A DNA stretch of 64,000 bases from Bispira polyomma (Eukaryota), in the NCBI GenBank assembly GCA_965649765.1, contig OZ287756.1, positions 57,350,001 through 57,414,000 on the forward strand, written 5' to 3'. Under the pieces are notes generated by a model that saw nothing but the letters and a program-made list of their open reading frames with translations, did no database searches and was not told where the DNA came from. Below are positions 3,836 to 49,206 of this stretch, piece after piece. Numbering within the stretch: the stretch's first letter is position 1; each line of letters begins with the position of its first letter. The position numbers and the translations under genes are program-made.

Positions 3836-4390
3836 CAGTGCCCTACCCAAGTAAACTTGTATATGTGATGTAACACAGGAAAATAACAAGAAAGGTAGGT
3901 TTTGGGGATATTAGCTTTAATTTTACTATGTTATCACTAATAATTATTTACATACTGTGTAGTAAGGGGCCACCTTAGCCCCAAGAGTTTAGGAGAAGTT
4001 AAGAGTTTAAGGTGACCTTAGCCTGAGGACAACAGGCCAAAGTGACCAAAGGGATTTTTAAAATTTAAGGGGGGGGGCCCTAGCTTGAAAGTTAGGGCTC
4101 CCTAAGATTGAGTTTAAGGTTAAGGGTAGCCCCAACTTGGAAGTCAGGGTTACCAAAGATTGAAATTTTTAAGGTTGAATTTAGGGGTACCCTAACTTGA
4201 AGTTAGGGTACCCTTAGAATGAGTTTAAATTTAAGAAAAATGGTAACCTTAGATTTTATTTGAGGTTGCCAAAAGAGATTTAGTAAAGATGTAAAAGGAT
4301 TAAATTAGTATAAGGTAAGGTGGCCCCAAAATATTTATATTTAAGCATTATTATATTTTATTTGTATATAATGTATGTAAATAAAGCCCC
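3836..4390 (-). repeat. E1 split direct repeat B2
   Basis: Near-identical to 5487-6043 (a few substitutions/indels). Confidence 0.95.
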
Positions 4391-5291
4391 CAAAAAGGGT
4401 AAAATCGAAGTTAAAAACCATGGTACTAGCTAATAGACTAAAAACTGTGCTGCTCACTAATAAAGTCCATGAGAGTAGCAAAAACTCACTAGACCTTAAA
4501 CCCCTAGCATATACAATTACCATGGCTTACAGAGAACATGCATACAGACATGAGCAAAATATAAATCGAGTAGCTGTTGTCTTCCAGGAGGGCAGTGCTT
4601 GCTTGTATAGAGTTCATTCCTGACTGAGCCACAAGAGATCCATGAATCCCGTATGCCTGAAACTACATGCTTACAGTTCAACATGTGATCACAAAGCTAC
4701 CAAATGCACTTGCACACAACATGATGTGCAATGCATTGTAACGTTATACTAGCAACCACACCAGGTTGCGAAATACAAACATTTTACAAATCCAGTCCTC
4801 GTAACGAGGAACAACATTACTAGTTATACTTTACATGCTATTATAACAACAAAAAAGGATGCCACTTCACATACTGTATACGTATAAATCATGCTGCCTG
4901 ACGCAGGATATTTGACAACATTATCAATTTGATATACAACAAAGGGAACACCCTGAAGACAATAAAGTAACGTACAATTGATAACAACAAAAGGAGACGC
5001 AACCTCAGCAGCAAGCAGCTACCTACAAGAAAGTGTTGGCCCCTAAGGGCCCTGGTGTTACCCAGAAAATATGGGAGATAAGTCACCTGAGGCCCCAGAA
5101 GGCCCCCAAGGGCGAGGAACTGTGAAGGCCAGCAGTAATGCATAACTCGTGGGCCCACAGCCCCGAGCCCCCACCCCCCTGCGCCAAGGTGTAAAGTGAG
5201 ACTTCAGGAACCCCAGGGACTGCATGCAGCACTCCAGGGACGGACGCATAGCTGAAAACTACCGAGGAAGTAGAAGGGGCAAGTGGGTGGG

Positions 5292-5486
5292 TAATGTAAA
5301 ATATTAAAGATGGCGTTGTTGCCTACATGACTTCACAAGTATAAGTGAGGATTCTAGCTAAAAAGCGGGAAACAGAGGTTAATTAGTACACAAATCGCCA
5401 ATTAGGAGAGGGTTTAAAGGGCATGAACCCAAGGAGGAAAATACTGGTAGCACTGAACTTGCTATCCCCTACGGTGCTACCCCGCA
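5292..5486 (-). repeat. E1 split direct repeat A2
   Basis: 195 bp, appears identical to 10829-11023; directly abuts B1. Confidence 0.95.
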
Positions 5487-6043
5487 CAGTGCCCTACCCA
5501 AGTAAGCTTGTATATGTGATGTAACACAGGAAAATAACAAGAAAGGTAGGTTTTGGGGATATTAGCTTTAAAATTTTACTATGTTATCACTAATAATTAT
5601 TTACATACTGTGTAGTAAGGGGCCACCTTAGCCCCAAGAGTTTAGGAGAAGTTAAGAGTTTAAGGTGACCTCAGCCTGAGGACAACAGGCCAAAGTGACC
5701 AAAGGGATTTTTAAAATTTAAGGGGGGGGGCCCTAGCTTGAAAGTTAGGGCTCCCTAAGATTGAGTTTAAGGTTAAGGGTAGCCCCAACTTGGAAGTCAG
5801 GGTTACCAAAGATTGAAATTTTTAAGGTTGAATTTAGGGGTACCCTAACTTGAAGTTAGGGTACCCTTAGAATGAGTTTAAATTTAAGAAAAATGGTAAC
5901 CTTAGATTTTATTTGAGGTTGCCAAAAGAGATTTAGTAAAGATGTAAAAGGATTAAATTAGTATAAGGTAAGGTGGCCCCAAAATATTTATATTTAAGCA
6001 TTATTATATTTTATTTGTATATAATGTATGTAAATAAAGCCCC
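5487..6043 (-). repeat. E1 split direct repeat B1
   Basis: Copy of 3836-4390; begins a few bases after the YR stop. Confidence 0.95.
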
Positions 6044-6052
6044 AAAGCCCAA

Positions 6053-7099
6053 CTAGGAAGTAGTAGAAGGGGCAAGGAGGGCCTTGAAGGTGAGGGCGAC
6101 TTGGTCAGATGCATTGTGATCCTGTACAATATATTTCCACACACAATCAGACGTCCAAGTGCCATGGCTCTGGATATCTTGAATTGGGACATTATTGTTG
6201 AAGGCCCAGGTGGCACCTGAACGCCTGAAGGTGTGGAAAGAAATGTTTGATTGCTGGAGGCCAAGACGCCTCAAAATTTGGGTGAGATTTTGCCTAGCTT
6301 GGGTGTCAATCATTGGAGACCATTTATGGTGTTTTTTAAACTGAAAGAGAGGAGAATTTTTGTGTCCAGGAGTAATAGCCAGCAAGGCCCTTGTGGCAGC
6401 CACCGGACAGAGACTAGAGCCACTTAGGCTCGGTATTTTAATAACTTTTGCTACATTCTTTGACTGCATTGTTTTAGACCACTTTATTATGAGGTGGAGG
6501 CCAGGGGAGGCAAAAAGTACGTCCCCCCGGGCCAATAGGACAAGTGGAGAGAATTGAGAGACAGCATGTGGAAGTAAGTTAGATATTCTAAGAAAAGAAA
6601 AGAAGGCAATGAGGTACAGAGCCTTGAAGATCTGCCCCATGTACATGCTGTCACAGATTTGAGTAATTTGGAGCAAGAGGGGAATGTCAATAATAGCGTT
6701 AATTTTAGCCCTGAAGGGGCTATTGAGTGTAAGAGCTTTTTGGTAATACTTAATTCTAGGATCTGCAAATGCAGAGACGTCAAGGCCATAGAGGGCCAAT
6801 TTAGCTTTAACTGCCAAAAGGTAGTTTGCAATGGAGGGGGAAGAGACCTGATTAACCACTAATACTTCTAAGAAAGCCAATATAATAAGGGAGGAGATAT
6901 TTTGAGGCCTGACCTGAGCAAAACTACAATAGGCCAAGAATATCCTAAACATATTTGTATAGGCCCTTTCAGTGGCTGGTCTAAAGGCCTGATGGGCTCT
7001 GTATGAGGCTTGTGTAGCAATCTTTCTTAGCTTGGAAGGTACATCTGCAATTAGATAGACCAATCTATTTCTAACATTGTGTCTTTTACTTTTACCCAT
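6053..7099 (-). CDS. E1 tyrosine recombinase (probable exon start 7044, spliced to gag)
   Basis: Catalytic motifs LRISNL (R), WSKT (K), HTFRR (HxxR), HGTW and terminal Y (WKYI) are all present. Confidence 0.93.
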   Translation of the reverse strand: MGKSKRHNVRNRLVYLIADVPSKLRKIATQASYRAHQAFRPATERAYTNMFRIFLAYCSFAQVRPQNISSLIILAFLEVLVVNQVSSPSIANYLLAVKAKLALYGLDVSAFADPRIKYYQKALTLNSPFRAKINAIIDIPLLLQITQICDSMYMGQIFKALYLIAFFSFLRISNLLPHAVSQFSPLVLLARGDVLFASPGLHLIIKWSKTMQSKNVAKVIKIPSLSGSSLCPVAATRALLAITPGHKNSPLFQFKKHHKWSPMIDTQARQNLTQILRRLGLQQSNISFHTFRRSGATWAFNNNVPIQDIQSHGTWTSDCVWKYIVQDHNASDQVALTFKALLAPSTTS

Positions 7100-9501
7100 T
7101 TGGGATTCGGTACCAGTTGTAGTAACTTGTCCTTATTACTGGCCGTGATCTGCCATCTGGAGAGGAGATCAGCCACTGTATTAAGTCTACCTAAAATGTG
7201 AATGGTTTTAAGGCTGATGTCATGGGAGGCTACGGCCATGAAGATGTTTCTGGCAATAGCTGCCAAAGTGAGGTCTTTAGTTTTGCCTGAATTTAGGATA
7301 GTGACCACGGCAGCATTGTCGCATTGCAATATTAGCCTCTTACCTGCCCAGGCTGACTTCCATAGCCTAATGGCAACTAGGATGTTTAACATTTCCAAAT
7401 GAACTATCATGAAATCTAGGTAGCCTAGAGGAATTTGGAATTGGTATACTTCATCATTACAACGGCCTCCCAACCCTTGGAGGCACGCATCCAACTGAAT
7501 ACAATCGGTAGTGGGTTTGTGTTCAAAGAAGGCTTTTCCATTAAATGTTGGTAAAAATTTTTTAAACCAATTTACATCCTGATGAAACTCAGGTGTGAGT
7601 TTTACTTTTTGATCCGAGCCTACAGATCTTAGGACGTCAAGCATTCGGTTTAAGAAAGCACGTGAAACTCGAACACATTTGGATACATATAACAATTTAC
7701 CTAGCAGTGACTGCAACTCCCTCTTACTGCAGCAGTTTCTTAATTGCCAGTCTTGCACAAGTGTGTTTATTTCTAGTAGCTTTTCATCTGGCAATGAGAT
7801 TGTCAAGTCATTTGTGTTAACTAAGACCCCCAGACACGTTACTGACGTGCTGGGGTGAACAAGTTTCTTGTGACTAATCGCAAAGCCTAGTTCCTGGAGT
7901 AAGTTTAGCAATATATCAAATGAACGTTTACTTTCTATGACGTCACCATAGCCGATTACGTCGTCGATATAATTGGTGACGTCATGTCCGTGACGTTTCA
8001 TGATGTACCTGACGGCGTCACTTAATCGCTGAAAAATTGCGCTCCCGTGCCGAAAACCAAATGGGAGGCAAGAGTCGACATAGTATTTGTCTAATTTCAA
8101 GCCTAGTAGATTGTAATCGGCTGGATCCATTTTCACGTGACGAAATGCCCGACTTACGTCAATTTTATATAGGAGCGTTCCACGTCCCATGCGACAGACT
8201 TTGTTTGTAATTGTGTCAATTGTGGGAAGGGTTAATGCAAACGCAGTACCGAGATACTTATCCTTGACTACAGCCGAGTTCACAGAGTTGCCATGAGGAA
8301 AGCTTAAATCTATGATAACGCGCCTGTGTGCGGCACCTGGTTTTTCCCTAGTCATAAAGGGAGAAATATGGAGGTTTTTTATGGGGGCCTTATGGAAAGG
8401 GCCCAACATGGCACCTAACTCAGTCTCTTCTTTTAAATACGCATGCACATCATCTGGAAATTGTGTTGCAGATGAATGATTCTGTTCTGTATGAGATAAC
8501 TTGCTGTCGGGATTAAAATCGAGGGGAAACCCATATCTTATCAAAAAAGGGAGTTGTTTATCCCAGTAGTCAGTCAAGTACTTTTCCCATACATCTGGGT
8601 TCAACTCAGATTTCAATTGAACTTGTGCCCCCATATAATTTGGGTAGTTGTCCTTCTTAATGTGAGTGTGTAATTCTAACAGAGACTTATCCGACTTTAC
8701 TCGTTTATCCGTTTGGGGAACTCGGAGGTCATTTAGCGGAATAAACCCATACTTATCTGTAGTTTGAGTATCCCATTGCTGGAACTGAGGCTGGTTGGAA
8801 GCCTGTTTTATAAGTTCCCTGTTTTTCGATTTAGTTTGTAGCTCTAGGTCATATTTGTCTGATTTGATTCCCCCAGTAGCTCGAGAGAGTATTTTAAAAC
8901 CTTGACCCTGGTTACAAGTATCTGGTAAATGTGTGACAGAGTTGTCACTAATGTGCATATAATGGTCATTGTCACTCAACGGGGAAAACCTATTGTGAGT
9001 GGAAACGGGCCATTTGCCCTGCATGTCTAATTTTGTGATTTCCAGCTTTTGGCCAAATTGATCACCTTTTGTTGGAGGGAGTTTACCCATTTTTGACATT
9101 ACATTATGCCTCTGTACACTTGTGAAAGGAGAAGCATCTTTTGTGAAAGTTTTAACACTCACTCTGTGGCCCCGTTCATGCTTTGTGGACCCCTCTGAAA
9201 TTTGGTTGTTATTTAAACATGGTGAATATTTAACGTGGTGACTTTGCCACCTCTGAGTCACATTGGCACTTTGTACAGAAAACTTTATGGCAGCAGACCT
9301 GGAGGGAGCCTTTCTTTTAACCACATCAGCATAAGATCTATTTACAAATTTGGCCCAATCTGCCCTCCAATGTGTACTGGCAGTATTACATTTAAGACTA
9401 TTATACACGGTTCTAGTAGGACAACCTTTAGAAATATTTACAACTTTTTGTGCAAGTTTTTTCTTGACCACCTCTTGTGTGGAGGAAACATGGGGTGGCA
9501 C
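7051..9501 (-). CDS. pol: E1 Pol: reverse transcriptase and RNase H
   Basis: RT motifs KIDVSRAFRH, LPFG, YIDD, CLG; RNase H motifs DACLQG, HLEMLN, CDN, ADLLSR. Lies in the -1 frame relative to gag. Confidence 0.95.
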   Translation of the reverse strand: MPPHVSSTQEVVKKKLAQKVVNISKGCPTRTVYNSLKCNTASTHWRADWAKFVNRSYADVVKRKAPSRSAAIKFSVQSANVTQRWQSHHVKYSPCLNNNQISEGSTKHERGHRVSVKTFTKDASPFTSVQRHNVMSKMGKLPPTKGDQFGQKLEITKLDMQGKWPVSTHNRFSPLSDNDHYMHISDNSVTHLPDTCNQGQGFKILSRATGGIKSDKYDLELQTKSKNRELIKQASNQPQFQQWDTQTTDKYGFIPLNDLRVPQTDKRVKSDKSLLELHTHIKKDNYPNYMGAQVQLKSELNPDVWEKYLTDYWDKQLPFLIRYGFPLDFNPDSKLSHTEQNHSSATQFPDDVHAYLKEETELGAMLGPFHKAPIKNLHISPFMTREKPGAAHRRVIIDLSFPHGNSVNSAVVKDKYLGTAFALTLPTIDTITNKVCRMGRGTLLYKIDVSRAFRHVKMDPADYNLLGLKLDKYYVDSCLPFGFRHGSAIFQRLSDAVRYIMKRHGHDVTNYIDDVIGYGDVIESKRSFDILLNLLQELGFAISHKKLVHPSTSVTCLGVLVNTNDLTISLPDEKLLEINTLVQDWQLRNCCSKRELQSLLGKLLYVSKCVRVSRAFLNRMLDVLRSVGSDQKVKLTPEFHQDVNWFKKFLPTFNGKAFFEHKPTTDCIQLDACLQGLGGRCNDEVYQFQIPLGYLDFMIVHLEMLNILVAIRLWKSAWAGKRLILQCDNAAVVTILNSGKTKDLTLAAIARNIFMAVASHDISLKTIHILGRLNTVADLLSRWQITASNKDKLLQLVPNPKWVKVKDTMLEIDWSI

Positions 9502-9531
9502 TGCATCACTGCAGTGCCTTACTCGTTTTTT
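9497..9531 (-). promoter_or_regulatory. -1 ribosomal frameshift signal, E1 gag/pol
   Basis: A_AAA_AAC in the gag frame (9531-9525), 6-nt spacer, then hairpin GGCACTGCA-GTGA-TGCAGTGCC. The -1 frame runs directly into pol. Confidence 0.8.
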
Positions 9532-10493
9532 AACGGATATTTTTTACAGTCTTTTGCAGGGTGGGGGTAAGACCTCCCATTTTGAAAGCATTGGTTACAC
9601 ACATGACTATATGACACACCTTTGAATTTGTGATCCCCTTTTTGGGGGCAAGTACCCCTCTGGAAGTACCTACATGGGATGGACTTCTCATGACTTTTCC
9701 TGGTGTTGGTTTGATAATTACTACTTGCAGTCTGGCTGACAACCCTTTGGGCATGAGCCCGTCTAATCCTGTCCAACTTGTGGGCATCTCCCCAGGTTAC
9801 CTTACCCTCTTCCATTTTACAGAGTACAACGGCATGGCTAGCCTTAGCCGAAGTCCAGGAAAAGTCATGAGCGTCCTCCATGAGGTCAGTGAGATAGTCC
9901 AACATTTGGTTTTTAACGTCTAAATTACTTTCATCTCTAGCTATGCTGGCAAAACCAGAGACCCACTGGGCCATTGACAACGCGTCATACGTAACTCGTG
10001 TTTTGTTTTGTCCCCCTAGTATAACGTTCTGAGGCCAAGCCACCTTATTCTTCACCCACAGAGTGTCGGGACCCCCTCTTTGAGATTTTGACGTACCTGA
10101 CTCGTTAATGGCCACCAATTCCTTAAGACGTGAATCCACTGCAGTCTGTAAGGAGTCGGATGTACGTAGTGTGTGTAGCGTCGGAACCAGTAGCTCAGAA
10201 GTGGTTTGGTCCGCCTGTCTAGGTTGGGCTGCACTCCCCGGGCTCGACGCCGTCAAAGCCTGGGCTCCATGTGAACTGCGATAAACTTGCTGCTCAACTT
10301 GGGTCATACGCCCACTTAATGCTTTGAGTTCAGTCAAAATTTGTAAATTAACGTCGGCAGCAGTTACACCATCGCCAGTCACAGAGTTCTGCTGGGAGGT
10401 TCCCACACCGATATGCATTTTACAGTTTTCATCAACGGGCTTAACATGACTAGTTTCACACTTGTGACAGTAATATTGTTTCCTTGGGGCCAT
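9519..10493 (-). CDS. gag: E1 Gag-like protein
   Basis: N-terminal CxxC..H..C, coiled coils and C-terminal Cys/His zinc knuckle; homologous to ORF1 of E3 and E4. Confidence 0.9.
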   Translation of the reverse strand: MAPRKQYYCHKCETSHVKPVDENCKMHIGVGTSQQNSVTGDGVTAADVNLQILTELKALSGRMTQVEQQVYRSSHGAQALTASSPGSAAQPRQADQTTSELLVPTLHTLRTSDSLQTAVDSRLKELVAINESGTSKSQRGGPDTLWVKNKVAWPQNVILGGQNKTRVTYDALSMAQWVSGFASIARDESNLDVKNQMLDYLTDLMEDAHDFSWTSAKASHAVVLCKMEEGKVTWGDAHKLDRIRRAHAQRVVSQTASSNYQTNTRKSHEKSIPCRYFQRGTCPQKGDHKFKGVSYSHVCNQCFQNGRSYPHPAKDCKKYPLKNE

Positions 10494-10828
10494 AGCCTCT
10501 GAATAATATAAGAACTCGTGGCTTTGATACCTGCAACTATACTAAAGGAACTGTAACGCGATAATCTGAATTGAATTATGTAATCAGGCAAATAGCCGTG
10601 AATTGGATGCAATATAATTGATTTGACCACGTTCCTTTACCACCGCTCAAACGAGCATATAATCGCAGGACTCAAAGTAGAGTAAAACACAGGAATCCAG
10701 CACAAGCACTGCAGATCAGGTCCTCCTTAGTGTGTAGCAGCACTTAGTGAATCATTTGTTGCATTTCTTGTTTCCATCACACAGATAATAAAATCAGTGA
10801 AGTAAAAATAAAACACATAAAAGTAAAA

Positions 10829-11023
10829 TAATGTAAAATATTAAAGATGGCGTTGTTGCCTACATGACTTCACAAGTATAAGTGAGGATTCTAGCTAAAA
10901 AGCGGGAAACAGAGGTTAATTAGTACACAAATCGCCAATTAGGAGAGGGTTTAAAGGGCATGAACCCAAGGAGGAAAATACTGGTAGCACTGAACTTGCT
11001 ATCCCCTACGGTGCTACCCCGCA
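10829..11023 (-). repeat. E1 split direct repeat A1 (5' end)
   Basis: Matches 5292-5486. Confidence 0.95.
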
Positions 11024-26245: not shown

Positions 26246-28429
26246 ACACAGGCACAATGTCTATTCTATATTTTATAGCTACAGTTGTACATGAGAAATT
26301 ATACATATGGTCAAACATGTCAAGCTCTAACTTTCTTGTAATCAATTGTAATCAGCTGCAAACGAGTTTCAACTGGCTTCAATTGATAGCAAGAGTACAA
26401 CATTCGAAAGGTCACATTAAACATCATTTAAATATGCAAATTTATAATAATAGAAGCTAATATTTCTGTCATGTCATTTATTAATCTAATAGATATGTAA
26501 ATATGTAGCAAAAAATCAGTTGTATATTAAGCAATACACTGTTCTTTGTATATTAATTTTTATAAATTTTCAATCTCTCATAAGCCATACTTGGCATGCT
26601 GTGTAACAGGTTAAAGTATGATAAAAAGTCTATCCATCTATCTATCACTGGGCTAAAATAAGTCTACAGCAAATAAAATCTTAACAGAGCGGTTAAACAT
26701 ATGGATGCCTTTATTGGCAATACCGGTTATTCAGATGAATAAATTATTATAATATTGTATATTTTATTGATTGCGTGTAATAGAATAATAGTACATCCAA
26801 CATATTAAATAGCTTCATAGAGTTAAGGCATGACAGGGTGAAAATGAATTCCCAATACAGTGCACATGATGCTAACAGTGCCCTAGTGTGGTGAGATTGA
26901 ACATGTGGAAGTACGACAGAATATGATATAAAGTTTGGAGGTTTTTCTGTACAAGTTAGTTTATCTATACCCAGAGTTACAGTGTGTAAAACAATAGATA
27001 TAAATAAAATCCTATAGGAGCTCACATACATATAATAATAATAGTTTATTTTCATACTAATAGTACATAAAAAAGATATAGATACAGATGAATAGAACAA
27101 ACATATAAACATAATTACATATCATTACAAATAAAGATAAATGAAAAAAAAATTTACACTATTTTATTATAACTTTCATCAATTAGTACACAAGAAATTT
27201 ATAATTTCAATAATTTTTTCCTTGCTAAAAGCCTTTTTACTTGCATATTTTGGTTTTCTGATGATATCAAACCTCACACCATCTTCAGCTTCACAATTTG
27301 ATAATACAAGGCATATCACAAGGTCTGACATCATATTTGAATATCCATGAAATCATAAAATGGTCAAAAACCAACCAAAACAGATTTAAGGGGCTATGAA
27401 CTTTACAGCATAAATGCGCTGCCGAGATATTATGCTGCATTTATTCGATTTTATTTTAGCCTATATATACTCACTTTACCTGCCTTATAACTATAGTTTA
27501 CTCGCAGTTTTAACCATTTTAGATGTAGAAACAATTTAAAACTTCAATATTGTATTGTGACGTCACATAATTTTAAATCTATAGTGAAACGTCATATTTG
27601 TAAACAATTCTCGCAGAGACATTTCTATCGTGATATAATATAAGTATTGATCCAGCATATATGAAGGTATTATATACACTACACAACTTTAAAATATGTG
27701 TATACTATTTTGAATGAATTACATTTTTAAATAGGTTTTCTTATTTTATATGAAAGAAGAATTGAAAATACTCTTTCTTTCAGGATATGGTAACTTATAT
27801 AGTTTTCTAAAAGAGACCCGGTTTTTGTATTTTATTTGAAAAAATATATTATTTAAAATAAAGCTGAAGATTTCCTTTCTCTAGTGATTTACAATACCAC
27901 AGTATTAATTCCTTCTTGTGTGTGAATTGTGTAACGTTTGTGAACCATGTTCTTACAAATGTTAACCATCTTTTTTTTCAAATTTATACACACTGCCATA
28001 TGTATTATATGTCCTAAAATATATATTAAAGTGAGTCATAAAATCTATAAATTAGCATATAATTAAAATAGTTTTTTTTTGTATTATTTCTACTGACAAA
28101 AATGGAAATATGTTATCTATAAATCGAGTTTAAGGCACAAAAATAAAAGTTGTGCAGTTTGTGAAAGGCTCCAACTGATGAAACGTGGGAATTGGCGATT
28201 AGTTTATGTGTTTACGTTTTGTAAGCGAACGCCCTCAGCGTTCGTGGCCTCAGTTCTGGGGTACCAGCCTGTTCTACTATTATGGGATGGTGTACGACTA
28301 TATAAGGCTCTCCTTTTTCAAATTCTCCCGCCTTTATCGTTTCGTCAGCAGAGCAACAACTAGTTTAAAATTTGTTTGGGTGACATTTTGTTTATGGTGT
28401 TTACGGTTTTATAATTTACAATATCTTAG

Positions 28430-29518
28430 TTGAAACACCATCTAGTCATGCCTGTCTTTGATTGTACTCAATGCTTAACCAAACATGAGCGTCCTGTCGG
28501 GCGAAATTGCGTTACTGCAAAAATTGTTGACTCTGTCTCTGGGGAGGAGATCGATGCTGCCTCAGACACTGAACCCGCAAACGGTGAGTCCGGCGATGCA
28601 GTTACCAATGCTATACTACTTCAACTGCACTCGATGAACGAATTAATGGTGAAAATGGACCAGCGGGTTCAGAGGAATGAGGCAGCATTGGCGACGAACC
28701 TTACCAGTAGTCAGGCAAGTCATCAGGTCCCCGTTCAGGCAAGTAGTAGTTTGATTAGTTCTAGTGTTGTCAGGCCTGCTAGTTGCTCTGCTGACGTAGG
28801 TAAGAGCCCATCTATCGCTACGTCCGACAGTATAATTCCTGGCATAGATTTTTTAAACCAGAATGCCCTAATACAGCTCCAAGTGGAGCAGAGATTGAAA
28901 GATCTCAAAACGTTGAATGAGACCACCTCGCAAGGTAAAATGAAGTCCCAGCGTAGTGGGGCGAATGAGGTATTGGTAAAGAAGGTCACCGCCTGGCCTC
29001 AAAATTATGTGCTGACGGGTAGTTCTAAGTCTCGGCCTAGCTACGATGAGTTAACCGTGTTGCAATGGGTGTGTGGTTTCGCTCGGATCGCCCAAGAGGA
29101 GAAGTCGATCGAAGTGAAGAATGCCATGCTGGATTACATGGGGGGTCTTATGGAGGATGCCCAGGATTTTTCTTGGGAGTCAGCTAAGGCCTGCCATGCA
29201 GTCGTATTGACAAGTATGGAGATGGATAAGTTAGGTTGGCTAGAGGTAGATAAGATGGATCGAATCCGAAGAGCCCATGCTCAGCGCCATGTGTCGAACA
29301 GTAGAAATTCCTCTGGGGCGAATGGACGGCTAGGTAACTCTAGTAGCAGTAAATCTGGCAGTCGTAAAGGTGCAATGTTTTGTCGCTTTTATCAGGAAGG
29401 AAATTGTAGATTTCCCAGCTCTCACAATACTGGAGGTCAGTTATATAAACATCATTGTGAGACATGTGAGGGTAGCCACAAGACTAGTGAATGTCATAAG
29501 AAAGGGGCAAAAAACTAA
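28430..29518 (+). CDS. gag: E3 Gag-like protein (ATG probably at 28448)
   Basis: CTQC..H..C N-terminus, WPQN, LMEDAQDFSWESAK and C-terminal zinc knuckle; homologous to E1 Gag. Confidence 0.9.
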   Translation: MKHHLVMPVFDCTQCLTKHERPVGRNCVTAKIVDSVSGEEIDAASDTEPANGESGDAVTNAILLQLHSMNELMVKMDQRVQRNEAALATNLTSSQASHQVPVQASSSLISSSVVRPASCSADVGKSPSIATSDSIIPGIDFLNQNALIQLQVEQRLKDLKTLNETTSQGKMKSQRSGANEVLVKKVTAWPQNYVLTGSSKSRPSYDELTVLQWVCGFARIAQEEKSIEVKNAMLDYMGGLMEDAQDFSWESAKACHAVVLTSMEMDKLGWLEVDKMDRIRRAHAQRHVSNSRNSSGANGRLGNSSSSKSGSRKGAMFCRFYQEGNCRFPSSHNTGGQLYKHHCETCEGSHKTSECHKKGAKN

Positions 29519-29543
29519 GGGGCCACTGCGTTGATGCAGTGGC
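29509..29543 (+). promoter_or_regulatory. -1 ribosomal frameshift signal, E3 gag/pol
   Basis: A_AAA_AAC, 6-nt spacer, hairpin GCCACTGCG-TTGA-TGCAGTGGC; the -1 frame continues into pol. Confidence 0.8.
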
Positions 29544-31938
29544 TAAAAGGGGTGAGCAAAAAAGTAGGTTTGTCTATAATACTAAATTTAAGGATGTACA
29601 GTTATTTGAGAGGTCTGTGTGTCAGAAAATGTGTAAATATGTGAAGGGCACCAGACCAGGCCTGAGCTATAGCCAGGCGTTGCAAAAGAATGGCCCAGTT
29701 CAAAAGTATGGGTGTGTAAATAGAAGTGTTAATAATGTACAGGTAAAACAGGCAAGGTTTGACAAGAGTAAGGTGAAGATAGTACATAACAAAAGTGACA
29801 CCTTGGTGAGGCCCCTTGGTACCTCTGTGAGCCAATTGACACCCATTGTGAAGCCTGACACGTGTGCGAAACAAGACAAGGGGATAACAAAGGAGGTCAA
29901 TTGTTCGAGATTGAATGGGGGCGAAGCGAGGCGGGTCAATGGGGGTGTGGCTGTCCTCCCTCTTGCTAACAGGTATACCGCTCTAATGTCGCTGCCGGTC
30001 GATGACAGTGAAAATGTTGACGAGCCCGTTCGATTCCTTTCTGTTACTAGTGACAAGCCCGTTAACCGAGGCAAGGCGAGGAGTAAAACTGCTTCCGAAG
30101 ATAGCCCGGGAAGTTTTGAATGTTCCGATAAATACGCTTGTGCTTTGAAACAGAAAGTAAATAAGAAAGGCATGTTAGCTAAGGCTGCCTCAAATCCTAC
30201 TTACAGAAAATGGCAAGCTCAAAGTCAATATGCATATGGATTCACTCCTCTCTCTGCTCTGGGCTGTGAGATTGCAGATCATGGTGGGGGAGGGCCCGAA
30301 CTTTCCATAGTGGAAATGCATGACTTAATTCGGGCTGATGGGAGACACAATTATGAAGGGTTGCAAATCCCTGTTCCCTCTCAATTAAGACCAGAGAGTT
30401 GGAAAAAATACCTTAAAAATTACTGGGATTGGCAATTGCCTCTCCTCATAAAATATGGATTCCCCCTAGATGTGGATCATTCAGTTAAACTGGAATCCAG
30501 TGAGATTAACCATAAATCGGCTGAGGAATATCCACAGCATGTAGAAGCTTATATGCAAGAAGAATGTGAGTTAGGAGCCATGTTGGGGCCATTTGACAAA
30601 CCTCCCATTCCGGGCTTGCATTGTTCTCCCCTTATGACGAGACACAAACCGAATTCAATTAACCGGAGAGTAATTGTAGACTTAAGTTGGCCTCAAGGGG
30701 GGTCGGTTAATGCGGGGGCATCTCCTTCCTCTTACTTGGGTGTTGAATTTTTGCTGTCTTACCCATCTATTGATAATCTCACTAGTGAGGTGGTAAAATT
30801 GGGTAGAGAATGCGAGATATTCAAGGTCGACATAAGTAGGGCGTTCCGTCACGTACCCATTGACCCTGGCGACGTTGACCTCCTAGGTCTAAAGTGGAAG
30901 TCCTATTATGTGGACAGATCTCTGCCGTTCGGATATCGTAATGGTAGCACGATTTTTCAGAGAATTTCGGATGGCGTGCGTTTCATAATGCACTCTGAAA
31001 ATCATAATGTCCACAACTATATCGACGATTTCTTGGCGATTTCTGTTCCCAGCAAAATTCAAAAAACTTACCTGAGATTGCAAGAACTGCTACAAGAATT
31101 GGGGTTGACAGTAAGTCAGAAAAAATTGGTTCCTCCCAGCACACAGGTTGTCTGCTTGGGCATAGTGGTGGATACCATTCGTGGTACTACTTCCATCCCG
31201 GTTGAGAAATTAAGTGAAATTAAATATAAGTGTCAGGAATGGAAATCCAAAAAATTCTGCACTAAGAGGGAGCTCCAGTCGTTACTTGGCTTGTTATTGT
31301 ATATTTCTAACTGTGTAAAGTATGCTCGTGTCTTTTTGAATAGGATGCTGGAACTGTTAAGAGATAATTACACCAGAAAGTATATTACCATCAACCCTGA
31401 ATTCAGGCGTGACTTAAATTGGTTTACTACTTTTGCAGAACAGTTCAATGGAGTCTCTTTCTTCATGCCTAAGCCCATAACTGGTGAGATTGAATTAGAT
31501 GCCTGCCTTACTGGAATGGGGGGTATTTTTGAGAAACAAGTGTACCAAATTAACATTCCTCCAGAAATGAGTGAGGTCAATATTGCTTCTTTGGAGATGC
31601 TTAACATCCTGGTAGCTTTAAAATTGTGGGTTCATAAATGGAAAGGTCATAGAATATTGGTCAGATGTGATAATCAGGCAGTTGTAAGTGTCTTACAGAC
31701 AGGGCGCACCAGAGATCCGGACTTAGCCACGTATTCTAGGAATATATACATGTTAGCTAGCAAGTTTAATATTGATATTGTTGTCATACATATTTTGGGT
31801 AAAGAAAATAAAATTGCAGATCTGCTGTCAAGATGGACTGAAACTGAAGCCAACCATTTGTTGTTATTTAGGTTAGCTGGGCCTGTCCAGTGGCTGCCTG
31901 CTTGCCACAGTTTATTAAAAGTTAACTCACTTATATAG
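29539..31938 (+). CDS. pol: E3 Pol: reverse transcriptase and RNase H
   Basis: KVDISRAFRH, LPFG, YIDD, DACLTG, LEMLN, CDN, ADLLSR. Confidence 0.95.
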   Translation: MAKRGEQKSRFVYNTKFKDVQLFERSVCQKMCKYVKGTRPGLSYSQALQKNGPVQKYGCVNRSVNNVQVKQARFDKSKVKIVHNKSDTLVRPLGTSVSQLTPIVKPDTCAKQDKGITKEVNCSRLNGGEARRVNGGVAVLPLANRYTALMSLPVDDSENVDEPVRFLSVTSDKPVNRGKARSKTASEDSPGSFECSDKYACALKQKVNKKGMLAKAASNPTYRKWQAQSQYAYGFTPLSALGCEIADHGGGGPELSIVEMHDLIRADGRHNYEGLQIPVPSQLRPESWKKYLKNYWDWQLPLLIKYGFPLDVDHSVKLESSEINHKSAEEYPQHVEAYMQEECELGAMLGPFDKPPIPGLHCSPLMTRHKPNSINRRVIVDLSWPQGGSVNAGASPSSYLGVEFLLSYPSIDNLTSEVVKLGRECEIFKVDISRAFRHVPIDPGDVDLLGLKWKSYYVDRSLPFGYRNGSTIFQRISDGVRFIMHSENHNVHNYIDDFLAISVPSKIQKTYLRLQELLQELGLTVSQKKLVPPSTQVVCLGIVVDTIRGTTSIPVEKLSEIKYKCQEWKSKKFCTKRELQSLLGLLLYISNCVKYARVFLNRMLELLRDNYTRKYITINPEFRRDLNWFTTFAEQFNGVSFFMPKPITGEIELDACLTGMGGIFEKQVYQINIPPEMSEVNIASLEMLNILVALKLWVHKWKGHRILVRCDNQAVVSVLQTGRTRDPDLATYSRNIYMLASKFNIDIVVIHILGKENKIADLLSRWTETEANHLLLFRLAGPVQWLPACHSLLKVNSLI

Positions 31939-31961
31939 CACGTGTTAGTCATGTTTTCCAG

Positions 31962-32947
31962 ATATACAACCTGTGGCCATCTCCTTGATGCAGAAAGCTT
32001 GTGACAGACTTGAACTTGCCTTCACCCCTGCCACTAACAGAGCCTACAACAGAATGTTCAGGCTGTTCTTGGCGTTTGGAGCCTTTATGTCATGGCCTCC
32101 TAAAAAGGTGACTGTGTTATATCTCCTAGCATATTTAGAGTTTTTAACGTTTAATGGTGTGTCGGCGAGTCAAGTTCTTAATCATCTTTCTGCCATTAAG
32201 GCAAAGTGTGTCCTCTTCCATATATCTGTAGACGCTTTTTCTGATAAAAGAATCACCTATTATAATAGAGCTTTGGCAATGCATAGACCATTGCAAGTAA
32301 AACTTAAGTCAATTTTCGACGTCCAGTTGTTGAGGTCTCTTATTATAAAGTGTGACAGCACTTACATGGGTCAAATTTTTAAAGCAGTTTATCTTACCAG
32401 TTTCTTTTCCTTTCTGAGGCTGTCTAACCTCTGTGCTCATTCGGTTGCTGCTTACTCTCCTCTTAAGCAGCTTGCAAGGGCTGATGTCCTTTTCAAGCCA
32501 GGGTATGCTGTCCTCATTGTTAAATGGTCTAAAACCCTTCAGAACAATAATGCCGTTCGTTTGCTTACCATCCCAGCTTTAACCAATTCCATTTTATGTC
32601 CGGTTCAAGCTTTAAAGAACATACTGTCTATTTCTCCCAAAGGGAAAGATTTGCCCTTGTTTCAATTTAAGCAGAATGCCATTTGGACTCCCCTCACTGA
32701 TACTAGGGTTCGCAGGCATCTTAAGAATGTCTTACTAATGCTGGGCCCGCAGTACTCTGGCTTGACCTTTCACGCCTTCAGGCGTTCAGGTGCCACGTTT
32801 GCCTTTAACAATAATGTCACCATTCAGGACATCTAAAGGCAAGGCACCTGGACGTCCGATTGCGTCTGGCGTTACATTTCGGATTCTGCCAATGCTGGTA
32901 CTCAAGTTGCCGATTCCTTCAAAACTATTCTACAGGATACGCACTAA
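31962..32947 (+). pseudogene. E3 tyrosine recombinase with a premature stop
   Basis: LRLSNL, WSKT, HAFRR, then in-frame TAA at 32834-32836 before RQGTWTSDCVWRY. The catalytic Tyr is lost; natural stop at 32947. Confidence 0.9.
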
Positions 32948-32958
32948 AATTTTTGGGT

Positions 32959-33502
32959 TTGGTGGCATGACTGTAACATCTAGTCAGTTTAACATTGCAA
33001 GTAGCATATTAATTACCTGTAAACTAAATGAATTAACTGTGGGCATAAGGTCCCCCTGTATTATTAAAGTACATATTGTACTCATGTAATTAAAGTTGCA
33101 CTTAAACCCTAAGTCAAACTTTAATTTGTTAATCTTCAAAGTCATATTTAAGTTTCAACTTAAATCAAATTTTCTAAATTCAACTTCTTTATTAGTTAGG
33201 GTTACTTAAACTCATTCTGGTTTAACCTAAAGTCCTAAACTCAGTTGAGTTAAGGGGACCTTATGCTCACACAAAGTGTATATCATGTCAAAGAACTGTA
33301 CATAAATATCTTAGTAATAGTAGCTGTAAATATGAAATAAAATATATTTAACCGCAGTATTGTCTTTCTATGACTTCTTCGGTTAATTGAGTTTCCTCAG
33401 GCACTACTATTATGGGATGGTGTACGACTATATAAGGCTCTCCTTTTTTAAATTCTCCCGCCTTTATCGTTTCGTCAGCAGAGCAACAACTAGTTTAAAA
33501 TT
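32959..33502 (+). repeat. E3 B1 and A2 internal repeats
   Basis: B1 matches 34243-34691; A2 matches 28274-28372; they overlap at CTACT (33404-33408). Confidence 0.93.
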
Positions 33503-34242
33503 CCCACCCTCCACTTAACCCCTTTTAGTTGGAATGTTGCTACTATTAGTACGAATATATTAGTATGGATGTCTTAAGAAATGTTGCATATATTGTTGTT
33601 AAATGCTACTGTAGTTAGCTATGTATTTTCAGACAAATGGGAGTCAGAATAACTTTGTCAAATGCCTCACTGCCTTGTTGGAGTCCACCACTGGGACCTG
33701 CCGTTTGTATGCGACATCAAGTGATTGTGTCATCAGAGTGTAGAACAGTCTGGCAGACTAGTGTCTGGGCCGGTGTAATATGTCAGTGGTGGACTCTGCG
33801 TAAAATATTATAATTTACATTATCTACATTTTACTTCAAAGTTTACCTTCTTTTATACAAGTTTACATTACATGTGTCAATTCATTGGATAAGGGGTCGT
33901 ATTATTCGATCACGTAAGGGCGTTGCGGTTTGAGCTAGATGTAATGTAGCATAATATGGGCTAAACGTATATATAAGTTTCTTTTAGTAATCATAATGTG
34001 GTACTTACCTGGGGCTTTATACATTATTGTTTATAAATTTATTGGGCAGGATGAAGTTTACATTGGTTTTAAATTCCTCAATCATAGTGCATGAACTATT
34101 TTATAACATTTTACATCTTTTACAAATTATTGATTGTAACTTTTGTTATTAATATTTTAAATATCAGTCGCAACTGAGTTGCTACTGGGGTTCTGATGTA
34201 CTATGGTTGCGGTTCTGTGATATGCATGATAGAGTATGCGGG

Positions 34243-34702
34243 TTGGTGGCATGACTGTAACATCTAGTCAGTTTAACATTGCAAGTAGCATATTAATTAC
34301 CTGTAAACTAAATGAATTAACTGTGGGCATAAGGTCCCCCTGTATTATTAAAGTACATATTGTACTCATGTAATTAAAGTTGCACTTAAACCCTAAGTCA
34401 AACTTTAATTTGTTAATCTTCAAAGTCATATTAAGTTTCAACTTAAATCAAATTTTCTAAATTCAACTTCTTTATTAGTTAGGGTTACTTAAACTCATTC
34501 TGGTTTAACCTAAAGTCCTAAACTCAGTTGAGTTAAGGGGACCTTATGCTCACACAAAGTGTATATCATGTCAAAGAACTGTACATAAATATCTTAGTAA
34601 TAGTAGCTGTAAATATGAAATAAAATATATTTAACCGCAGTATTGTCTTTCTATGACTTCTTCGGTTAATTGAGTTTCCTCAGGCACTACTCCGAGGAAC
34701 TG
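34243..34702 (+). repeat. E3 split direct repeat B2
   Basis: Near-identical to B1, plus an 11-nt terminal CCGAGGAACTG. Confidence 0.93.
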
Positions 34703-36048: not shown

Positions 36049-36234
36049 CAGTTTGCCCAAGTAAAGGTAAGTCAAGGTCAGGATATGAAGAGAGGTACTA
36101 TATGTGGTTGGAAGTGATGTAATAGGTTAAATGTTTGAGAGAATTTATTTTCTATACATGTTAGAATCTATTTACAAAATAATAGTGGGTTAAAACCTAC
36201 TTTTAAAAGTTATAAAATAATTTTTAAAATGCCC
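36049..36234 (-). repeat. E4 split direct repeat B2
   Basis: Matches 36899-37084 with a few substitutions. Confidence 0.93.
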
Positions 36235-36680
36235 CTACCGTTACAATATTATGACAGTATACAACAATAACGTAACTAGGAAGACACCTTCTAACAAGCA
36301 TTCAGTAAACCGTCACTGTATCTTAATACAGTATATCATCAATAATACATAGTGCTTAAAATTTTTATATCAATGCAGTTGACCCATATGTGTCACTGAT
36401 AGTAGATTTAACAGCAATTATATGCTAAACCACGGACTAGCCGAAATCGATTGCTCGACCCCAAGGGGCGAGTGAGAAAGTTGCAATTTGTATAACACGG
36501 CCCAGGAGGGCTAGGGCATCCATCGCCTGGCAAGGGTAGATCCAGCCTCTCAGAGCCCATTTTCAACCCTGGCTCCCTAGGCGTGATGCTCAGGGGTGGG
36601 TTAAAGAAGACTGTATCAAGCCCCCACTCGGCCTCTAAGGCAAATAACTTAATCTAGTTGTGGTAAGGGGAGGAGGTGGG

Positions 36681-37084
36681 CAAATTAACGTGTGTATGCT
36701 TCAGTATCAAGAAGCTTAATGGAGAGCTTCTGGAGGGAAAATGTATTGTTGCTTAACACAAAGAACTGGCTGGGTGTATGGTTGGATGGACAGAGCGAAA
36801 GAAACCAATCCATTCGCCAGGGGTTTAATTAAGGTAGTTTGTAATATAGTGTGTGGGGTCAACTGAAGTATCAGACCCCTTTAGGGTCTTGATGTCTACA
36901 GTTTACCCAAGTAAAGGTAAGTCAAGGTCAGGATATGAAGAGAGGTGCTATATGTGGTTGGAAGTGATGTAATAGGTTAAATGTTTGGAAGAATTTATTT
37001 TCTATACATGTTAGAATCTATTTACAAAATAATAGTGGGTTAAAACCTACTTTTAAAAATTATAAAATAATTTTTAAAATGCCC
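36681..37084 (-). repeat. E4 A2 and B1 internal repeats
   Basis: A2 (218 bp) matches 42165-42382 and abuts B1. Confidence 0.93.
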
Positions 37085-37092
37085 AAGCCAAA

Positions 37093-38069
37093 CTAAAGGA
37101 ATTTAGGGATAGAGGAAGCAAAGGTGAGGGGGACTGAGGAAGCTGCCTTTGAAGTCTTCTGGAGGTAAGTCCAGACCGCAGACGACCTCCACAGTCCATG
37201 TGACATTATATTTTGTAATGAAACATTATTGCTAAAAGCAAATGTTGCTCCAGAGCGCCTGAAAGCATGGAAAGTGTGTGATTTTTGTGGAATGCCAGCG
37301 TATGTTAGTATAGAGGCTAGAGCAGAGCGAATGTGTGTGTCTACTATGGGTTCATGAGGCAGTGTGCCAGACACAAATAAAGGATGAGTGTCTGGAAGAA
37401 CCCTAGAAGTTAGTAAGTTTTCCAGTGCTGTCACTGGACATAATTCTTTATTTTCTAGTAGAGGAAGTTGAATGATATGGACCTCACCCCTAGTTTGTAA
37501 GTTTTTGGCCCATTTGATGATGACATGAGCTCCTGGAGGGCCAAAAATGATATATTTCCTTAATAGGTGTCGGGTGTGATCAAATTGTGCCCTGGAGTGG
37601 GGAGTAATGTTAGAAATTCTAAGGAAACCAAAGAATGATAGTAAAAAGATGGCTCTGTACAGTATAGGATCTTGTAGGGAATTGCATGCTTTAGATATAA
37701 GTAGTAAGTGTTGGATTTCAAAGATTCCTTTTGGTAAGGGGTTAAATTGAGAATTGTGGGCTAAGCTGCGAATGAACATAGCTACAGTGTTGTTCTCGAA
37801 AATAGTGGTATCTAGATGATATTTTTTAGCAATAAATTTTATACCAGCCAAGTAATTGTTAATTGCCCCTGTAGATGTACCATTCTGTACTAAATATTCC
37901 ATGAATGCTATCACCACATTGGTAGTAATAGTAGGAACCCCAGCAAAGCAGGTGAATGCTAAAAATGTTCTAAACTGTTGCTTATATGCTGACATGGTCT
38001 TTGGTCGTAGTGCTGTGTTAATTCTTTCCCATGCTGAGCCCACAAGCTCCTGTGTAGCCTGAGTGGATC
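37093..38069 (-). CDS. E4 tyrosine recombinase (probable exon start 38069)
   Basis: LRISNI, WAKN, HAFRR, HGLW and WTYL are intact. No ATG at the ORF start; TTTCAG acceptor present. Confidence 0.9.
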
Positions 38070-38081
38070 CTGAAATTCAAC

Positions 38082-40736
38082 AGAAATGTCAAAATTAAAG
38101 AAATTAAGTGGGATTTGTTGCCACACGAAATCTTCTCTTGATAAGACATTCTGTTCCTTAACTGAAAAGTGTTCAGAATAAATTCTAGAAAGTGCATCTG
38201 CTATGCAATTTTTCTTCCCCTTAATGTGATCTATTTGTAATGTGATGTCGAATTCTGCTGTAAGTAACCATATATTCCTAAGACATAGCGCTAAGAATTC
38301 ATCCTTAGTCTTATTAGTACCAACGACTAGTACCACCGCCATGTTGTCACAAAATATGTTAATAGTGCTGTGTCTCCACTGTTCACCCCAGACTTTGAGA
38401 GCTATCAAAATATTTAACATTTCAATGTGTACAATGGTAAGAGGCCTATTGTATACATTTTATAAGGGAGAAGCGTAGACCTGTTGGTTGTAAATTCCCC
38501 CTATACCTGTTAAGCAGGCATCTATATATACGATGTTAATATCAACATCAATTTTCGAATTTATGTAAGTTATTCCGTTATAGCGTTTAAGAAAAGTAAT
38601 AAACCAGGCAATGTCTGCCTTCATAACTGGAGTAATTTTGAACCGTTTTGCTTGAGGGTTACCACGGAATGCCATAAGAAGTCTATTAATGAAAACTCTA
38701 GCAGGTCTAACACATTTGTGTATATATAGTAGTTTACCTAACAATGATTGGAATTTGCTGCGAGATATCCAGTGTTTATTAAAAATGTCAGTACATAACT
38801 GGTGAGTCTCCCCAATCTTTTCTTTGGTTATACTAATTGTACCTGCAATTAAGTCAATGTCAATACCTAGACAAGTAATTTTGGTGTCAGGAGCTGATAA
38901 TTTGTCAGCATTAACGGGAAGTCCCAGTGACACGACTAAATCATGAAGATCTTGAAAAGCTTTGTCTGCTGTATTTTCCTCCGATATACCTACGTAATCA
39001 TCAATATAACAAAATACCTTATGATCAATTTTTTCCATGGCATAGGCAATTATGTCTGAGCAACGCTGAAAGGCCGCGGAGCCGTGGACCCAGCCGAACG
39101 CGACCGCTGGATCCACGTACTTACCGCCTTCAAAACATATCCCTAGTTTCATAGCGTCCACCGGATCAACGTGCAAATTTCTAAAAGCCCTAGAAACGTC
39201 CAACTTAAAGATTCTCGGATTTTTGGTAATACGTATTTGTTGTACTATATCGTCTATGGTAGGAAATTTTAATGTAAATTGGATACCGTCAAATAGAAGT
39301 TTATCAACATTATCATTAAGTGATTGACCCTGTGGGTGTGATAGGTTCAATATAACTCTACGTTTATTTAAGTCTTTAGGACGAGTGAGGAGGGGCGAAC
39401 AGTGGTACAAGTCGCTATGTATATTCTCTACTGGCCGGAACATGGCGCCATTGACTTTTTCTTTCTGCAGATAGTGACTAACTTCAGCCTTAAACTGTAG
39501 AGCTGAGTAATGATTGTTAGCCTCCTTAACCTTGAGAGAAGTCGGGTCATTCAAGGAAAGAGGGAAGCCGAATTTTAAGTATTGTATAAGTAACTTATCT
39601 GGGTGATCTGCTAAGATTCTTTCCCATTGTTCAATGTTAAGGCCTGAAATTAAAGGAATTTGTGCTCCTTTATAGTTGGGGCAACCTGTGTCCCTAATAA
39701 TACTGGCTACGTAAGCCATTTGGTCAACAGAAGAGATTAACATGGGAGCCCTGTCTGGACCTGTAAAAGTAAAATTTGAGTTGGATAACATGAGAAAACC
39801 CCTATTCTTATCAGGTAAGTTCATGTCTGTAATGTCCTTATTGCCCTTAAGAACTTGTGACTGAAAATGTGAGGTTTTCCCGAAGAAGTCGGTGAACGAC
39901 ACCAAGACATTATCCTGTTGCATGCTTACTGGCTTAGCTACAGTCACAGGCTGAGCAGCCAACACTGACTGATCATTGTCATCATTTTCTATGATCATGT
40001 CAATAATATTAGTTATAAATTCTGTATAAGTACATAGATGGCTCCTAACTGAGGCCATGTCTTTGTGATAATTTCCAAAAACCTCATGGGGGCTAAGATC
40101 CCCCTGTGAGTTAACAACAGGGTTGAGACACACAGACTCCTGGTCACCTTGTATATATGATACCAGAACAAAAGTTTGAAAAGTTTGAATTATACTGATG
40201 GGACCCTCTGGAAGGACATCACATCTGATGTAATCATAGTTTTGATTATCCGAACTTGGCTTCTGAAAGAAAAAACCTGCAAAGTTACCTTTGACAGCCC
40301 TTAGATAAATGATAGGTAAGGTTTCAATGTTGTCAAAGAAGCAATGTGACCAATTGGTAATTTGAACAATTACTTCACACATGTGTGACCTAATGTCTGT
40401 GTACGTCTTCCCTGGAGCATACTGCATTAGTCCATTATCATTACACATATATACACCATTATATGAGGACCCTGTACTGGTGTCCATGATAGCTGCAGTA
40501 TATAGAGAATTGAAGTCATTTTGTTGGAATCTAAAATTGACCCCCTTATTATCATTAGTATTACACGTGCTGCCTTCACTCTGGCAGAGCACTTCAAATT
40601 CTTTATCAGTACTAATATTGACATGACTATATGTAGGTATGAAATAATTTCGACTCTTAGCTATATTCTGACTAATCACACTCAGTTCCCTACAGTACTT
40701 CCCCAATGTGCGTTCAGCTAGTCGTTGGTTACTGTC
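38082..40736 (-). pseudogene. pol: E4 Pol (RT/RNase H) with an in-frame stop at 38460-38462
   Basis: KLDVSRAFRN, AFG, YIDD, DACLTG, then after the stop HIEMLN, CDN, ADALSR in the same frame. The 3' limit is approximate because this frame stays open to 37959. Confidence 0.88.
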
Positions 40737-41921: not shown

Positions 41922-42164
41922 TTCGTTACCAGGTGCAGATTCACTAAATCACTAAAACCACTAGTGTCGTGAATACATTCAGTTAATTAATAAACACTGC
42001 TATCGTCCATAACACGCACTAAAATCAACAAAAATAAAACCCATAAATGCACATTCCAATTATTCCTCGCCACATAAAATACTTCACACTAAAACATAAA
42101 ATAATTGTAAATAAAATAAGAAACATAAGATGAACAAGTTTCTTAATTCCTTTCCTCAAATTTC

Positions 42165-42382
42165 CAAATTAACGTGTGTATGCTTCAGTATCAAGAAGCT
42201 TAATGGAGAGCTTCTGGAGGGAAAATGTATTGTTGCTTAACACAAAGAACTGGCTGGGTGTATGGTTGGATGGACAGAGCGAAAGAAACCAATCCATTCG
42301 CCAGGGGTTTAATTAAGGTACTTTGTAATATAGTGTGTGGGGTCAACTGAAGTATCAGACCCCTTTAGGGTCTTGATGTCTA
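42165..42382 (-). repeat. E4 split direct repeat A1
   Basis: Matches 36681-36898. Confidence 0.93.
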
Positions 42383-48840: not shown

Positions 48841-49206
48841 CCCATCCAAGAACACGTAACTGATAATATGCAAAGCAACACTTTATATAGATTAATGGAA
48901 TTTTATTATTCCATTTATTGTTTAAGTATTTAGGATACCAAACACAACGTTTTTCATTGTAAAATTTAATTGTAGATGGGAACTGATAATGTCTCCATAT
49001 GTCTGTGTTTCAAGTTTCAATCAATAAAGTGATACATGGACATCAGTTTTCGAGTGGAGAGAACCACTGTGTTAAGATTACTGTATTGGAAACGTCACTG
49101 GTCTTAAACAAGTCTACTGCCAAAAATTCAACATCTTAGGGCTGCAATACATATGTATACATTCAATGGCAATACAGGCCACTGTAAATTTCACAATAAC
49201 ACAATA

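Follow-up and report, generated by a model that had tools for sequence, protein, structure and literature searches.

Tyrosine recombinases cut a DNA strand 3′ of the bound arm (5′-arm/spacer-3′; here and below a slash marks the break), leaving a 3′-phosphotyrosine. Recombinases of the Tn916 and Tn1549 type insert duplex circles without homology. For retrotransposons that carry a tyrosine recombinase, the use of the internal junction as template for the ends is an accepted idea, and their integration is still a paper model. The arms of the usual tyrosine recombinase core sites lie 6–8 bp apart (PMC3212892). The circle junction of DIRS-1 is self-complementary (PMC7192593), and a 3-bp junction was described for DIRS1-like elements (PMC3266345). 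Throughout the literature searched, Ngaro elements were described by their split direct repeats only; the search returned no link of Ngaro to a palindrome, hairpin, cruciform or attC, and no defined Ngaro recombination site. An earlier mention is possible in the founding Ngaro papers (Goodwin and Poulter 2004; Poulter and Butler 2015), which lie outside the literature searched.

The window analyzed here, a 64,000-nt stretch of contig C9 of a 1.04-Gb animal genome, contains three full Ngaro-type elements: E1 (3836-11023, minus strand), E3 (28220-34702, plus strand) and E4 (36049-42382, minus strand). In each of them the open reading frames follow the order gag, RT/RNase H and tyrosine recombinase, as expected for Ngaro (DIRS order), and the Pfam domains RVT_1, RVT_3 and Phage_integrase or its SAM-like N-domains were located in Ngaro order. 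Split direct repeats with the Ngaro layout A1-ORFs-B1-A2-B2 were identified in all three using repeat families (D3, D10 and D17 in E1; D5, D11 and D16 in E3; D6 and D12 in E4) and self-BLAST, with A2 and B2 parted by a unique spacer in each element. The long inverted termini and internal complementary region of DIRS1-type elements were not found; the termini are direct repeats, with only short inverted arms. Between the elements lies a host gene, an intronless 319-aa ORF (44703-45662, minus) with a full rhodopsin-family 7TM domain (E 1.8e-29). The window also contains tandem repeats at 48054-48886, 60580-60855 and 63254-63451 with periods of 58 nt, approximately 64 nt and 33 nt, respectively, the last of which seems to encode an acidic repeat.

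The B/A junction of E1 was located at 5446-5498 on the minus strand, where the initial annotation proved right on the arms, on a spacer of 31 nt and on a break directly behind ACTG, which is also the boundary of the A and B repeats. Ten base pairs make up the inverted repeat, which has a bulge of 2 nt; in element sense the junction reads GGTAGGGCACTG, break, 31 nt, CAGTGCTACC. The 5′ arm (5487..5498, minus) is the last 12 nt of B1 and ends in GCACTG; the break is at 5487/5486. The spacer (5456..5486, minus) is the first 31 nt of A2, starts with T and has a weak inner hairpin at its 5′ edge, and the 3′ arm with which the end of B pairs, CAGTGCTACC (5446..5455, minus), is nt 32-41 of A2. The break is set by the repeats, A at 5292-5486 (= 10829-11023) and B at 5487-5871 (= 3836-4218), and both termini of the element adjoin unrelated flanks at the same bases. 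At the 3′ terminus (3836..3847, minus) B2 ends in the same 5′ arm and unrelated flank comes next, while at the 5′ terminus (10983..11023, minus) the spacer and 3′ arm stand at the start of A1, with unrelated flank before them. The E1 hairpin is the weakest case in the series, with DNA fold z-scores of −1.7 (sense) and −2.1 (antisense), marginally beyond shuffles. A second hairpin in the A repeat of E1, in which nt 7-16 pair with the 3′ arm, was rejected as E1-specific and absent from the conserved layout. A perfect 9-bp hairpin at the gag-pol boundary (window 9508-9550; L048:7268-7303; L049:2693-2728) surfaced through the junction covariance model; it contains GGCACTG/CAGTGCC (here the slash separates the two strands of the stem), the core of the E1-group junction arms, and may be a coincidence.

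The internal B1/A2 junction of E4 (36854..36910, minus) has the arms and the 33-nt spacer quoted for it in the initial annotation, with 12 nt in each arm and the break at 36899/36898. The arms are paired at 10 of 12 positions and the spacer carries a 9-bp inner hairpin. For E3 the junction had been reconstructed from the two ends of the element. The 3′ terminus (34688..34702, plus) provides a 15-nt 5′ arm ending in GAACTG at the end of B2, and the 5′ terminus (28220..28263, plus) provides a 31-nt spacer with an 8-bp inner hairpin, followed by a 13-nt 3′ arm. The start of A1 was confirmed by sibling copies, and the reconstruction was upheld by five of these (on C1, C4, C5, C8 and C10), in which the B end and the A start are exactly adjacent; relatives of E3 and E4 in this genome were judged from match coordinates only. 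At the internal B1/A2 junction of E3 itself (33399..33408, plus) a deletion of 65 nt between two copies of CTACT has removed 11 nt of the B end and 54 nt of the A start, and with them the whole hairpin (33403/33404). The palindrome was present in E1, in E4 and in the ends of E3, and missing from the internal junction of E3. Its loss between 5-nt direct repeats looks like slippage across the hairpin, as would be expected of a single-strand structure. E3 is a young copy (its repeats are 99-100% identical) whose termini still carry both arms despite the loss of the internal hairpin.

Searches of the same genome gave more than 12,000 candidate recombinase matches, and 20 E1-related loci were sampled from it. 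Elements from genome assembly ENA ERZ22147071, reached by protein searches, served as the second source. Repeat-defined junctions were obtained for nine lineages (E1, L036/L041/L042, L037, E3, E4, L051, L052, L053 and L055) with recombinase identities to E1 down to 39%; the position of each junction was set by the A and B repeats alone, independently of the palindrome. All nine lineages, from two genomes, share a common layout in which an arm ending at the break is followed by a spacer of 30, 31 or 33 nt and a complementary arm. Counted from the break, uninterrupted Watson-Crick pairing is 5–9 bp long, with an empirical p of 0.0005–0.027 per junction against 40,000 random window positions; the per-junction values multiply to about 1e-17 as if they were independent, a figure that is overstated because the lineages are related. 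Across seven core pairs in eight aligned junctions, 98.2% of cells were paired versus 82% in shuffles, none of 500 of which reached the observed value, and slid controls on the same alignment were 21–52% paired. Four of the seven core pairs have changed on both sides. Position −5 is C-G, A-T or G-C among the eight aligned lineages (T-A was seen only in the unvalidated candidate L058), and in L052 the pairing ACTG with CAGT is replaced by AATG with CATT, a compensating change.

These data bear out the initial description of the junction as a structure-conserved imperfect palindrome, the arms of which vary and yet remain complementary, and of the two features that it proposed to compare across Ngaro families, arm covariation held in eight aligned junctions and spacer length in nine lineages of two genomes. 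Two of its details were too strict: ACTG precedes the break in 8/9 lineages (AATG in L052), and A starts with T in 8/9 (with G in L053). TG opens six of the nine A repeats, and the 5′ arms are G-rich. The non-coding DNA that flanks the junctions is past alignment in divergent lineages that keep the arm geometry. Beyond the 6-bp core the arms of one element differ by indels of 1–2 nt, and bulges and mismatches vary in position and side among lineages, with no extrahelical bases at conserved positions.

Among more distant relatives, no significant hairpin was found at the junction of L056 (recombinase 34% identical). L073 and L077, two metagenome contigs with recombinases 30–32% identical, have 9-bp arms of quite different sequence, spaced 30 nt apart and with an inner hairpin, and a repeat-defined break that lies away from the arm edge. 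In L073 and L077 (L073:4120-4200, L077:3596-3676) the last 8–11 nt of B resemble the first 8–11 nt of A, with single mismatches, which is the pattern expected of a canonical 8-bp crossover shared with the target; each of the two contigs is without one end. An unanchored scan for inverted repeats 3′ of 17 distant recombinase genes gave p < 0.02 for three and p < 0.1 for seven, and nothing for about half. Three candidate junctions were rejected. The ACTG-based candidates in L058 and L059 were unsupported by the covariance model and had stronger unrelated inverted repeats nearby, and the minimum-energy fold of L054 did not use the arms, despite a covariance model E of 0.004. Most contigs in the metagenome search were too short, as were five of twelve contigs looked up, and a search of viral contigs yielded no relatives. 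From these comparisons the hairpin is a general feature of a broad clade, and is not proven for all Ngaro elements.

Every junction folds into the predicted hairpin, with DNA z-scores extending from the −1.7 of E1 to −6.0. In E3, E4, L051, L053, L055 and, weakly, L052 the spacer alone comprises 5–6 unpaired nt, a 7–9-bp stem with a 4–5-nt loop, and 4–6 unpaired nt; the whole fold in these six lineages is an outer stem, a symmetric internal loop of about 5 x 5, an inner stem and a small loop. The E1 group departs from this pattern, with an inner hairpin that is weak and shifted to the 5′ edge of the spacer. Both strands fold about equally well as DNA, and the wobble pairs, counted symmetrically, number 14 G.T versus 9 A.C and leave the strand undecided. 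Position −7 is G.T (G.U) on the sense strand in five lineages, a hint of sense-strand folding. The initial annotation had called the site attC-like. The nested fold of 6/9 lineages, with the break where the 5′ arm meets the spacer, brings it closer to attC than was stated; the bulge positions, however, vary among lineages, and the recombinase model resembles Cre.

Two of the elements, L041 and L040, lie within a 189-nt satellite, and in comparison with intact units no base was gained or lost on insertion. Sixteen insertions had no target-site duplication and all ended at the same two bases; their targets are AT-rich around the break, with a weak WT/RRA preference and no similarity to the ACTG/TGCGGG of the element. 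When B ends were collected by BLAST without reference to A, 19/19 of those adjoining a flank stopped at ACTG. TG, which is also the first two bases of A, came next in 4/19, suggesting an overlap of at most 2–3 nt, and after ACTG only 1–3 bases ever matched the start of A. Neither these 19 B ends nor further terminal B ends included an insertion with shifted ends. The satellite pair and the 16 insertions agree with the earlier claim of insertion free of target-site duplication and with little target homology.

Several features of the copies themselves were recorded in addition. The 189-nt satellite holds three of the 20 sampled elements (L038, L040 and L041), each with its own position and orientation; this may reflect a preference for satellite DNA or simply the abundance of the satellite. 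A short form, A-ORFs-B, accounts for 10/15 E1-like copies (L032-L035, L038-L040, L043, L044 and L047); it ends at ACTG against the flank and has no A2, spacer or B2. Recombination of B1 with B2 could account for it, and so could a circle with a single junction that integrated. Tandem arrays of a 1656-nt unit, A-spacer-B, were found at C2:3427825-3437941 (at least 7 units) and in L031 (C10:4722147-4732137), and each unit boundary in them is a complete B/A junction.

The tyrosine recombinase ORF of E1 (6053..7099, minus; 348 aa) is intact, and the catalytic R, K, H, R, W and Y columns are conserved. Its predicted structure (pLDDT 82) has a Cre-like fold and matches Cre over both domains (TM 0.70/0.75). 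Cre and its engineered variant Tre took all of the best 32 places among the structural matches, with Xer, lambda Int and Tn1549 Int ranking lower; integron integrase (IntI) was not among the 50 best structural matches, and a sequence search of solved structures gave no match. As the initial annotation had pointed out, the arms are too far apart for the usual recombinase core site. A canonical site, with arms of 11–13 bp and a homologous crossover of 6–8 bp, was not found; the spacers are 28–33 nt long, a distance that a Cre-like duplex synapse presumably cannot span, and there is no target homology. Taken with the polarity of cleavage by these enzymes, the break after ACTG implies that the sense strand would be cut, beside the 5′ arm. 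If the other arm, 28–33 nt away, were cut symmetrically, insertions with shifted ends would result, and none were seen; had an antisense hairpin been cut in the canonical way, the ends would lie at that other arm. The single-stranded cDNA of DIRS-1 is antisense (PMC7192593), and since the polarity of the recombinase points to the sense strand, the earlier suggestion that a folded site would suit a reverse transcription product does not follow directly.

In six of seven families (E3, E4, L036, L051, L052 and L055) AATAAA or ATTAAA precedes the end of B by 53–101 nt, E1 being the one whose B has no poly(A) signal within 400 nt of its end, and a TATA box is located 80 nt into the A repeat of E3. 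This placement suggests that the internal hairpin is the only one in the transcripts, the terminal arms being left out, which would fit the internal junction as template for the ends.

On the anatomy of the junction and its conservation, the hairpin is probably the attachment (recombination) site of this Ngaro clade, cut on the sense strand. The B/A junction is a nested imperfect palindrome of about 55–75 nt, in which a 5′ arm of 6–20 nt ends exactly at the break (...N-ACTG/T) and a spacer of 28–33 nt is closed by the 3′ arm (CAGT-N...). The internal B1/A2 copy would be transcribed, the terminal arms probably would not, and the internal copy would be the template for the B2/A1 junction of a replication intermediate. 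There the Cre-like recombinase would act at the junction, cutting the sense strand where the 5′ arm meets the spacer and joining it to a near-arbitrary, weakly WT/RRA target, with precise insertion without duplication as the outcome. The distance between the arms, the absence of shifted ends and the nested symmetric fold favor a site that would be read in a folded form, as a hairpin of the single sense strand or as an extruded cruciform, and not as plain duplex, with exchange of the sense strand only. The more specific proposal, that the recombinase uses a folded sense single strand, that this is exchanged with a duplex target and that replication completes the insertion, is possible but doubtful.

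Other explanations were weighed against the attachment site. The hairpin may act at the level of RNA or of cDNA synthesis, guiding packaging, priming or the template switches by which the ends are rebuilt; in one variant the G-rich 5′ arm would resemble a polypurine tract, with plus-strand DNA starting at the first base of A. The G.U at position −7 in five lineages points in this direction, and with RNA parameters the sense strand was 6–13 kcal/mol more stable than the antisense strand in 5/8 junctions, although the composition-corrected z-scores showed no consistent sense bias and no Rfam family matched the junction. Such a role would also agree with poly(A) and TATA signals that keep only the internal hairpin in the transcript, with the six A repeats that start with TG, and with the relationship of the DIRS-type RT/RNase H to that of Ty3/gypsy (PMC3266345). 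The purine runs are short and interrupted, however, and the base-exact match between the integration break and the boundary of arm and spacer is left unexplained. We consider an RNA-level role to be unlikely as the principal explanation; it and a DNA site are not mutually exclusive.

Slightly less likely still is an ordinary duplex site in a double-stranded circle, in which the arms would be distant binding sites bridged by bending or by an accessory protein and insertion would be homology-free, as in transposons of the Tn916/Tn1549 type. The Cre-like two-domain fold, with the Tn1549 integrase among the structural matches, the spacing of 30–33 bp (about three helical turns) and the AT-rich targets are all in keeping with it. 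Arm covariation fits a protein reading both arms, and compensatory changes in the arms would be just as expected if one protein bound both arms as duplex. Against this, indels of 1–2 nt beyond the 6-bp core are hard to reconcile with a duplicated binding site, no obvious role would remain for the nested inner palindrome and its symmetric unpaired flanks, and a staggered exchange of two strands should yield insertions with shifted ends, of which there were none among the B ends examined. That the inverted repeat is functionless, whether it arose by chance or is what remains in A and B of decaying inverted terminal repeats of the DIRS1 type, appears very improbable. The fold of E1 that barely exceeds shuffles and the distant L056 without a hairpin would be expected of a functionless repeat, and the long inverted termini of DIRS1-like elements make common descent plausible (PMC3266345). 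The geometry and the compensatory changes nevertheless persist at 39% recombinase identity, where the non-coding flanks can no longer be aligned, and the product of the per-junction p values, overstated by kinship as it is, also stands against chance.

As a putative attachment site, a conserved and precisely placed hairpin offers a defined 60-nt substrate with which integration can be tested. It predicts that the sense strand is cleaved after ACTG and that compensatory mutations restore the function of disrupted arms; a genome with thousands of young copies bearing intact recombinase genes supplies the parts for such tests. The hairpin also connects Ngaro, through its short inverted arms, to DIRS-1 and its self-complementary junction. 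Use as a folded single strand, if true, would make it the first tyrosine recombination site of eukaryotes to be both single-stranded and structure-specific, and it could serve as a sequence-independent integration module.

In comparison with known systems, the Ngaro junction shares with loxP, FRT and dif inverted arms of about 10 bp, a break at the inner arm edge, the polarity 5′-arm/spacer-3′ and a Cre-like enzyme, but its arms are 28–33 nt apart instead of 6–8 bp and there is no crossover homology between element and target. Like Tn916 and Tn1549, Ngaro has a tyrosine recombinase and would insert a circle into varied AT-rich targets without homology or duplication. Those transposons differ in having inverted ends that flank a 5–7-bp heteroduplex of carried-over flank, whereas here the ends are constant and the arms distant. 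In the forked hairpin of CTX phage attP(+), inverted half-sites tens of nucleotides apart pair in a single strand to form the recombination site and one strand is exchanged, as may be the case here; that system, unlike Ngaro, uses the host XerCD, a fixed dif target and a naturally single-stranded phage genome. The DIRS1 junction belongs to the same retrotransposon order, its internal copy templates the ends, it is self-complementary, and insertion causes no duplication (PMC7192593, PMC3266345). It differs from the Ngaro junction, which has split direct repeats, an inverted part of only 6–20 nt per arm with one arm 28–33 nt inside the 5′ end, and no visible 3-bp overlap with the target. Integron attC, recombined by IntI, differs in that Ngaro is a eukaryotic retroelement with bulges at varying positions, a Cre-like recombinase and diverse targets in place of a fixed attI-like partner, and in that single-strand use is hypothetical here. 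The two sites are alike in being palindromes conserved more in structure than in sequence, with a short core beside the crossover. The attC succession of a paired box, an unpaired central part, a second paired box and a variable loop may have its counterpart in 6/9 lineages, weakly in L052, but not in the E1 group. In both, the crossover is on the inner side of the 5′ arm in the strand that is exchanged, presumably the sense strand in Ngaro, and the sharp boundaries of the Ngaro insertions fit exchange of one strand.
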